62,000 bases of DNA. Source: Octopus vulgaris. Its lineage: Eukaryota. Position 1 is the stretch's first letter. Every line of letters begins with the position of its first letter. The DNA is taken from NCBI GenBank assembly GCA_951406725.2, contig OX597822.1, forward strand, positions 43,420,001 to 43,482,000, read 5' to 3'. Shown in pieces: positions 50,705 to 51,259 of the stretch. Under the pieces are notes generated by a model. That model did not search any database. It worked only from the letters and a program-made list of their open reading frames with translations, and was not told the origin of the DNA. Both the position numbers and the translations under genes were made by a program.

Positions 50705-51259
50705 GCCCTGATACAGTACCAGGCAGTGGCTCTCATGGCTTCTGATCTTAACTGATTGGAAGTGTTATCATGTACATTGTTTTGTCTTGGTATAAAAGAT
50801 GGGCTACAGCAAATATTCTCTCTCAATACCACAGATTTGCTTGTCAGTTGTTTGACCTTAACCAGTTTAGCATGGCCCTCAGTGGCTGACGATATGTGCA
50901 TCTCTGATCACGAGCAGAAGTTGTGGGGGAGCATCATAGCCATGTGTTGAGAGGGATTCTTTGGGGTTTGAATAATTCACCTCTGGAGACATGGGTGGTT
51001 TTTTCAACAATCTTGAACAACCCTTATTCAGGGACCGTTTGAGCGGGATGGGCTACTCAACCTGAAGAAAATTCTAACTGGGCCCCACCTGCAAGGTCAT
51101 GTGCTGTTTATCTTGATATGAGATCACCATGTCGCGCACATATGGTTGTGATGCATGTGCCTGGTGTGCCCTTATCAGACGGGTAGTCATGATGGGTATA
51201 TTGGGCTTCGTATATTTTACCCCAGTGTCACTTTGATGGCATAAACTGCTCTCTCACTC
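50705..51259 (+). mobile_element. 555-bp non-coding element with precise ends in (AAT)n
   Basis: GCCCTGAT(A/G)CAGTACCAGG...CTGCTCTCTCACTC; same boundaries in 53362-54140. Confidence 0.85.

Follow-up and report, generated by a model that had tools for sequence, protein, structure and literature searches.

We analysed a stretch of 62,000 nucleotides from Octopus vulgaris (GCA_951406725.2, contig OX597822.1, positions 43,420,001 to 43,482,000 of the forward strand), hereafter the window, in which positions 50705-51259 hold a full-length copy of a non-coding element of about 554 bp embedded in an (AAT)n microsatellite. This element is almost certainly a retroposon that is mobilized through RNA, inserts specifically into (AAT)n and is truncated at its 5' end. 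The explanation that best accounts for the observations as a whole is that of a non-autonomous (AAT)n-specific retroposon copied by the enzymes of Dong/R4-type long interspersed nuclear elements (LINEs), which we consider probable. A first-pass annotation, made from the letters alone, had read the element as a passenger of Dong-like enzymes. Its description as a non-tRNA, non-coding, (AAT)n-specific retroposon stands, while the case for the use of Dong enzymes is circumstantial and comes from shared arrays, junction phase, 5' stutters and chimeras.

Element copies in the window

The copy at 50705-51259 lies on the plus strand, is 555 bp long, starts with GCCCTGAT and ends with CTCTCACTC. Its junctions with the microsatellite are AAT/GCCC on the 5' side and CACTC/AATAAT on the 3' side, where the slash marks the boundary. 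It is 97% identical to L003:1501-2054, a near-consensus genomic copy which, in place of a built consensus, serves as the reference for element numbering and identity throughout. By reading of the sequence, the target microsatellite extends over 50544-50704 upstream (plus strand), as (AAT)n with a (GAT)n block, and over 51260-51324 downstream (plus strand), where (AAT)n starts in the fixed phase AAT. The precisely bounded non-coding element first noticed at this position is thus a full-length copy of a dispersed repeat family.

A second full-length copy at 53362-54140 (plus strand) has the same ends and the same (AAT)n flanks, as the first-pass annotation had also observed. Its length of 779 bp results from an internal tandem duplication of element nt ~291-500, and BLAST aligns it in two pieces, element 1-500 at 53362-53860 and element 291-554 at 53868-54140. 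A third, 5'-truncated copy with an intact 3' terminus covers element nt 78-554 at 47896-48366 (plus strand; BLAST, 87% identity). Its truncation and 3' end agree with the earlier description, which had placed the start at 47903 and is corrected here to 47896. The 3'-end-only remnant that had been proposed was likewise recovered as an extreme case of 5' truncation, in which only the last 14-16 nt of the element are left between AAT runs at 50336-50351 (plus strand).

The longest open frame of the element, in all six frames, is 59 codons. ARAGORN detected no tRNA in it, and Rfam gave no match in the element, neither in a scan over 14 kb at E<=1 nor with the element alone at E<=10. Read from the sequence, the ends show no inverted-repeat relationship to one another, and the Helitron ends TC...CTRR are absent, as the element begins with GCCC and ends with CACTC. 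These results bear out the initial view of an element that lacks an open reading frame (ORF), terminal inverted repeats and a tRNA. Since no tRNA, 5S, 7SL or small nuclear RNA head is recognized by ARAGORN or Rfam, the element does not appear to be a canonical short interspersed nuclear element (SINE). The sequence also contains a TTTT run at nt ~76, which would terminate RNA polymerase III and therefore argues against transcription of the element by this polymerase.

A dispersed family in AAT-type microsatellites

The genome searched comprises 2.8 Gb in about 30 chromosome-sized contigs. A whole-genome search returned 3,854 first-look candidates, among them at least 40 full-length copies on many contigs with ~97% identity to the window copy. 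The last 14 nt of the element have 17,323 exact matches in the genome compared to 189 for a control, and the 20-mer spanning the 3' junction (these 14 nt followed by AATAAT) has 14,203 compared to 0. The corresponding 20-mer at the 5' junction has 7,228 exact matches, again compared to 0 for the control. Copies are found on all large contigs. The copy-number search that had been suggested thus gives ~17,000 dispersed copies, which local duplication alone does not explain. Among four sequencing runs checked, three, with three organism labels, each represented the family by tens of thousands of contig pieces.

Copies sampled without bias are between 83 and 99.5% identical to the reference copy (median 95.7%), with at least 98% in 15 of 69. 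This range indicates that the family is old and was active until recently. The commonest differences across the family are C>T and G>A at CpG sites (e.g., window 51133-51136), as expected from the decay of methylated CpG in old copies. Some copies occur in tandem (L002), and one pair (L139/L140) is a segmental duplicate.

An AAT-type microsatellite adjoins the 3' end in every copy inspected (>100), and in one orientation only. The repeat lies directly 3' and in the same sense in 30/30 of the best full-length copies and in 60/60 copies sampled by an exact 20-mer. A perfect AATAAT follows 82% of the 3' ends in one phase (14,203 of 17,323). Where the terminal 14-mer is not followed by AATAAT, all 19 sampled cases were element copies beside mutated repeats such as AGTAAT, AACAAC, AAGAAG or AATGAT. 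None of the inspected copies has the opposite orientation relative to AAT. Insertion into (AAT)n in the same orientation as the Dong copies, as originally proposed, therefore holds for all inspected copies, and the random orientation that would speak against it was not seen among them.

The repeat is also found on the other side of the element. A clean (AAT)n run lies upstream of 25 of 33 sampled full-length copies, and most of the others have degenerate AAN repeats at this position; among 46 truncated copies, 22 have no clean AAT run upstream. The presence of (AAT)n upstream of most full-length copies implies that the repeat is the target of insertion rather than a tail that the element produces. 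The 5' junction reads AAAT/G in 54% and TAAT/G in 16% of 85 full-length copies, frequencies which suggest that the element RNA may start 2-4 nt before the G at position 1. The element may include 2-4 further A/T bases at its 5' end that are indistinguishable from the target.

One-sided truncation and marks of reverse transcription

Truncation was assessed separately from each end. The 3'-end sample, which is blind to the 5' end, was drawn from the first 100 places of the terminal 14-mer on contig C1, of which 79 were examined. Thirty-three of these copies are full length and 46 are 5'-truncated, with starts scattered from nt 7 to 536. One copy (L044) has kept only the last ~16 nt of the element, similar to the remnant at 50336-50351 in the window. 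The 5'-end sample was taken from the same region of C1 and comprised 43 occurrences of the 5' junction, 42 of them assessable. The exact 3' 14-mer was present at the expected distance in 22/43, and among the other 20 examined from the 5' end, 17 were full-length copies with a point mutation in the 14-mer. Two more form a duplicate pair that has lost an internal segment and keeps the 3' end, and the last one (L129) stops at nt 283, where it is interrupted by a Dong-C insertion. The idea that the L129 fragment belongs to a longer LINE was rejected on account of this interruption.

Accordingly, the 3' terminus is present in 41 of the 42 assessable copies of the 5'-end sample, while 46 of the 79 copies of the 3'-end sample are truncated. 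Such a combination of a constant 3' end and variable loss at the 5' side is the signature of target-primed reverse transcription. This pattern had been predicted from the few copies in the window, and the symmetric truncation that would have contradicted it was not found, as truncation is confined to the 5' side.

Further marks of reverse transcription are found at the 5' ends. In L041 (G000:C1:1806750-1807789), a truncated copy comprising nt 95-554 directly follows an inverted piece comprising nt 84-351, an arrangement that can be classed as a 5' inversion of the twin-priming type. Among the 85 full-length copies, seven carry 5' stutters, i.e., they are preceded by one or more incomplete repeats of the sequence with which they start (17-65 nt), with AT or AAT as the linker. 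The most extensive case is L125 (G000:C1:30147300-30150200), in which nt 805-1750 consist of ~13 tandem units of 67-68 bp placed directly before a full-length copy, each unit consisting of element nt 1-65 and AT. Shorter stutters of 17-47 nt also precede full-length copies, and the same type of stutter is present at the truncated 5' end of L032. The R2 reverse transcriptase reportedly performs end-to-end template jumping, as described by Bibillo and Eickbush, and by analogy the 5' stutters of the element would fit such a process. Collectively, an RNA-mediated, (AAT)n-specific and 5'-truncating mechanism is evidenced by the genomic copies themselves.

Dong-type LINEs in the same arrays

The element copies of the window lie in one (AAT)n array of ~11 kb (43253-54320), which contains at least nine insertions, all on the plus strand. 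In addition to the four element copies and remnants, these are Dong-type LINEs at 43253-44395, 44577-47343, 48414-49073, 51325-52100 and 52108-53236. Within the (AAT)n of this array, blocks of (GAT)n and (AAG)n are also seen.

The insertion at 44577-47343 (plus strand) is a 5'-truncated Dong-A LINE that corresponds to nt 1318-4102 of the full-length copy and represents a candidate enzyme source. Dong-A also accounts for 51325-52100, where an internally deleted copy, with 5' untranslated region (UTR) nt 90-187 joined to 3' UTR nt 3998-4102, occupies 51325-51525 (plus strand) and a 5'-truncated copy (nt 3536-4102) occupies 51543-52100 (plus strand). The insertion at 52108-53236 (plus strand) is a fragment of Dong-B, which has 47-55% amino acid identity to Dong-A and an unrelated 3' tail. 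A fourth Dong-like lineage at 43253-44395 (plus strand; 34-43% amino acid identity to Dong-A) has its own 3' tail before the microsatellite, and a fifth at 48414-49073 (plus strand; a C-terminal fragment with 25-45% amino acid identity to Dong-A) has its own 3' tail before (AAT)n. The five Dong lineages found in the same arrays as the element thus have five mutually unrelated tails; all share its orientation, and each has the N/AAT junction phase. Dong 3' UTRs in this genome are about 100-280 nt long.

The full-length Dong-A reference (L103:3175-7276, ~4.1 kb) contains one ORF of 1253 aa with the domains RVT_1 and zf-RVT, and residues 457-1234 align with R2 proteins of known structure, from the reverse transcriptase to the C-terminal region. 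By these features Dong-A can be classed as a LINE of the R2 superfamily, with a single ORF predicted to comprise a reverse transcriptase, a C-terminal zinc knuckle and a restriction-like endonuclease region. Dong-A copies with open frames of 1138-1253 aa exist, and a degenerate pattern for the Dong C-terminal motif has 17,479 matches in the genome with at least six codon variants. At nt ~3046-3160 (L103:6220-6335), Dong-A contains a trinucleotide-repeat stretch that codes for an acidic run and gives a weak Prothymosin-like Pfam match in the window copy; this stretch cross-matches by BLAST the AAG/GAT microsatellites that flank many insertions.

In Octopus vulgaris, Dong-R4 is the LINE class with the most recently active insertions, with 5 families and 1,129 insertions, and RTE, CR1 and L1-Tx1 have likewise been recently active (PMC13282606). 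Full-length Dong is also present in the O. bimaculoides library (PMC9115989), and Dong is known as a TAA-repeat-specific LINE of silkworm, mosquito and a snail (PMC3812793).

Chimeras and ends of element and Dong-A

The element has no similarity to the five Dong lineages at either end, which agrees with the original remark that it does not visibly resemble the Dong 3' UTRs and extends it to the 5' ends, a comparison that had been recommended. A tblastx comparison of the element with Dong-A and Dong-B also gave no match. When the 3' terminal 14-mer was searched for as part of a longer element, all 79 sampled places were the element itself (0/79).

Two loci join the sequences of element and Dong-A. 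In L034 (G000:C1:717089-718128), oriented nt 204-914 consist of Dong-A 881-975, Dong-A 3204-3506 and element 240-554, in this order, with (AAT)n on both sides. The pieces have the same sense with no AAT between them, and the junction of Dong-A and element is unique in the genome. As the Dong pieces lack the Dong 3' end, an ordinary insertion cannot have made them. The simplest account would be a single event in which reverse transcription started on element RNA and changed template twice, each time to Dong-A RNA. L113 (G000:C1:4700959-4701822) is a 5'-truncated Dong-A copy in which the 3' UTR, at nt 392-460, is interleaved with four exact, collinear pieces of the element of 10-14 nt each (nt 75-88, 119-129, 175-184 and 227-238). 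The probability of this pattern arising by chance is ~1e-10 by a rough estimate, and it too is unique in the genome. It looks like copy-choice between element RNA and Dong-A RNA.

Dong-A also shows stuttering of its own 5' end, since the first 24 nt are present in triplicate in the L103 copy (L103:3175-3246) and once each in L104 and L105. Element and Dong-A appear to share the same 5' stutter behaviour. The chimeras and the common stutter suggest that element RNA and Dong-A RNA have been before the same enzyme. We consider it probable that the element is driven by Dong/R4-type enzymes, with Dong-A as the most likely source.

Other candidates for a physical link between the two were rejected. 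Amplified element/Dong-A hybrids are ruled out, as L034 and L113 each occur once. A possible fused LINE on contig C4, where the Dong C-terminal motif lies 259 nt upstream of a full-length element, was read as neighbouring insertions because none of the six motifs of this type within the first 15 Mb of C1 is beside an element copy.

Proposed mechanism and alternatives

In the mechanism we propose, a nick in an (AAT)n array would be the very site at which element RNA is copied into DNA, by target-primed reverse transcription. With strand and repeat phase identical at each priming event, the 3' end would be fixed. The reverse transcriptase would often stop early or jump templates before reaching the 5' end, and this might explain the truncations, 5' stutters, 5' inversion and chimeras. 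The enzyme would come from Dong/R4-type LINEs with a restriction-like endonuclease, with Dong-A as the prime suspect. Rather than a copied 3' UTR, recruitment might involve an (AAU)n tail acquired by read-through, which would pair with the nicked target in a role comparable to that of the poly(A) of Alu in its use of L1. This mode of recruitment is suggested by the missing shared tail, the fixed phase and the diversity of the Dong tails, and we put it forward tentatively. For the RNA itself, we infer transcription by RNA polymerase II from the first ~65 nt.

Some results weigh against this reading. L034 and L113 are single loci, which two deletions or gene conversion could also produce. No partner LINE with a matching tail was found among the five Dong lineages read, with lineages E-H left out, and the last 100 nt of the element, Dong-A, Dong-B and Dong-C have no common or significant fold. 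In the sequencing runs checked, the only match in an RNA library is a contig of 170 nt, from a poly(A) metatranscriptome, and it is no demonstration of transcription. The Dong lineages share no tails among themselves, however, and a missing shared tail therefore says little against Dong as the driver.

R2 gives rise to short internally deleted elements (SIDEs; Eickbush & Eickbush 2012, described in PMC3774820), and the element could alternatively be a SIDE-type derivative in which internal deletion of an unsampled Dong lineage left a 5' UTR ribozyme and a recognised 3' UTR. In Bombyx mori, Dong carries a self-cleaving ribozyme similar to that of hepatitis delta virus (HDV), whose position coincides exactly with the (TAA)n junction, and R2 SIDEs have this construction as well (PMC3774820). 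The location of the B. mori ribozyme cut at the (TAA)n junction makes a ribozyme in the element a reasonable idea, as the first-pass annotation had suggested. The very precise 5' end would suit such an origin, the length of the Dong 3' UTRs (~100-280 nt) would allow two UTRs to sum to ~550 nt, and three or more codon variants of the C-terminal motif of Dong fall outside the lineages read. The whole element RNA moreover folds better than shuffles (z = -3.1, 0/100 shuffles as good). Internal deletion of Dong-A does occur, as in the SIDE-like copy at 51325-51525; that copy was itself dismissed as an amplified SIDE, since its deletion junction (51414-51433) occurs once in the genome. Against a SIDE-type origin, neither end resembles the five Dong lineages, none of the 79 copies of the terminal 14-mer is part of a longer element, and the central 170 nt are common to a family similar to miniature inverted-repeat transposable elements (MITEs; see below) and not to a LINE. 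An HDV-like fold at the 5' end was found neither by Rfam at E<=10 nor by a loose descriptor scan for a nested double pseudoknot, which returned 13 candidates compared to a mean of 87 in shuffles, although this negative is weak because the same Rfam scan is blank on the 5' end of octopus Dong-A too. We therefore regard a SIDE-type origin as unlikely.

Less likely again is mobilization by a LINE outside Dong/R4, e.g., an RTE or CR1 lineage ending in AAT repeats, in which case the downstream (AAT)n would be a tail made by the insertion. Some LINE clades do end in short tandem repeats, e.g., RTE, which seeds microsatellite families in Lepidoptera (PMC2887409), and RTE, CR1 and L1-Tx1 have been recently active in Octopus vulgaris (PMC13282606). 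The 22 of 46 truncated copies that lack a clean AAT run upstream could be read in the same way, but the repeat is also upstream of most full-length copies (clean in 25/33) and is thus the target. Moreover, remnants of 16 nt sit inside uninterrupted AAT runs in the window and in L044, no LINE sharing the tail of the element was found, and both chimeras involve Dong-A. An explanation at the DNA level, either by a Helitron-like element or a PIF/Harbinger-type MITE preferring TAA/AT, or by duplication of microsatellite arrays, is close to refuted. It could draw on the A/T-rich targets, on the module common to a family with terminal inverted repeats, and on the tandem copies in L002 and the segmental duplicate pair L139/L140. 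It conflicts with the absence of terminal inverted repeats and of Helitron TC and CTRR ends, with the strictly single orientation and exclusively 5' truncation, with the dispersal of copies over all large contigs, and with the same-sense chimera of the element with internal Dong-A fragments in L034.

Composite origin

The first-pass annotation had listed a decayed inverted copy of the element at ~57355-57435. This match is longer (57344-57515) and is actually the core of another repeat, a copy of a MITE-like family of ~460 bp with imperfect terminal inverted repeats of ~75 nt, located at 57227-57687 on the minus strand. Its centre at 57344-57515 (minus strand) matches element nt 101-270 at 87%. 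The MITE-like family has many genomic copies with ~83% identity to the window copy, and its flanks recur as loose ends in many contigs. Only a module of ~170 nt, element nt ~100-270, is common to the two families, which implies that one family borrowed it from the other and that the retroposon is a composite. Judged by these alignments, its parts appear to be a 5' part of ~100 nt, which includes the 65-nt stutter unit, the MITE-shared module, and a 3' part of ~285 nt.

Relation to known systems

R2 SIDEs are already known as passengers of site-specific LINEs, and Alu is known as a SINE without a unique LINE tail. As described in PMC3774820, R2 SIDEs resemble the element in being short non-coding passengers of a site-specific LINE with a restriction-like endonuclease, inserted into the same target in the same orientation. 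However, SIDEs keep the 5' ribozyme and 3' UTR of their parent, while the element matches none of the five Dong lineages, and SIDEs are few and located in ribosomal DNA, while the element has ~17,000 copies genome-wide. Without parental UTRs the element is not built like an R2 SIDE, and the analogy to ribozyme-bearing R2 SIDEs drawn in the first reading is not supported.

The "relaxed" pair of Alu and L1 is similar in that passenger and LINE have no unique 3' sequence in common. Priming would in both cases involve a simple-repeat tail, poly(A) in Alu and, as we propose, (AAU)n in the element, and both systems show high copy number, 5' truncation and 5' inversion. The element differs in that its head is not derived from 7SL, tRNA or 5S, in its internal TTTT at nt ~76, and in its target, which is a specific microsatellite, whereas Alu and L1 use a loose TTTT/A site. 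SINEs of the stringent type (RTE- or CR1-tailed, and UnaSINE/UnaL2) are also non-autonomous and have a fixed 3' end followed by short repeats, but they share the 3' tail of their LINE, whereas the tail of the element is in no LINE found (79/79 14-mers were the element). The Dong elements of Bombyx mori (Dong) and DongAg and DongBg (PMC3812793) resemble the element in their fixed-orientation insertion into (TAA)n/(AAT)n, and octopus Dong shares both its arrays and its junction phase. In contrast to Dong-A, which is ~4.1 kb long, the element is ~0.55 kb and codes for no protein.

A high-copy, (TAA)n-specific passenger of Dong that is not derived from a LINE was not found described in the literature searched, with Repbase and Dfam outside the search, and the octopus repeat papers found do not describe the element family. 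The "unclassified SINE" or "unknown" families of PMC13282606 may already include the element without a name of its own. By its description, ~17,000 loci that are possibly listed as unclassified in the present repeat annotation are accounted for, and part of the structure of octopus (AAT)n arrays is explained, as these are graveyards of insertions in the same orientation. The many young insertions could be used as markers.

LINEs of the R2 and R4/Dong type are now engineered for targeted gene insertion, and what they need in an RNA template is known mainly for R2. A successful passenger without a UTR of the examined Dong lineages suggests that a repeat tail may suffice to prime (AAT)n-targeted reverse transcription, and the family offers a ready minimal template for testing this. 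More tentatively still than the recruitment through an (AAU)n tail, Dong-type reverse transcriptases could be relaxed in general and accept any RNA ending in (AAU)n, which would make the element the microsatellite counterpart of Alu. If so, a composite non-LINE RNA, in part MITE-like, would have out-multiplied any single feature of its drivers, and L034 and L113 would be fossil records of an enzyme switching between parasite and LINE RNA within one insertion. Should Dong not be the driver, the element remains a clean example of a microsatellite-specific retroposon.

Other repeats in the window

SINE copies of the cephalopod type, with a GGAATTTGAACTCAGA core, occur at 47490-47900 and 49100-49290, beside and between the (AAT)n insertions, and one of these copies abuts the truncated element copy at 47896.

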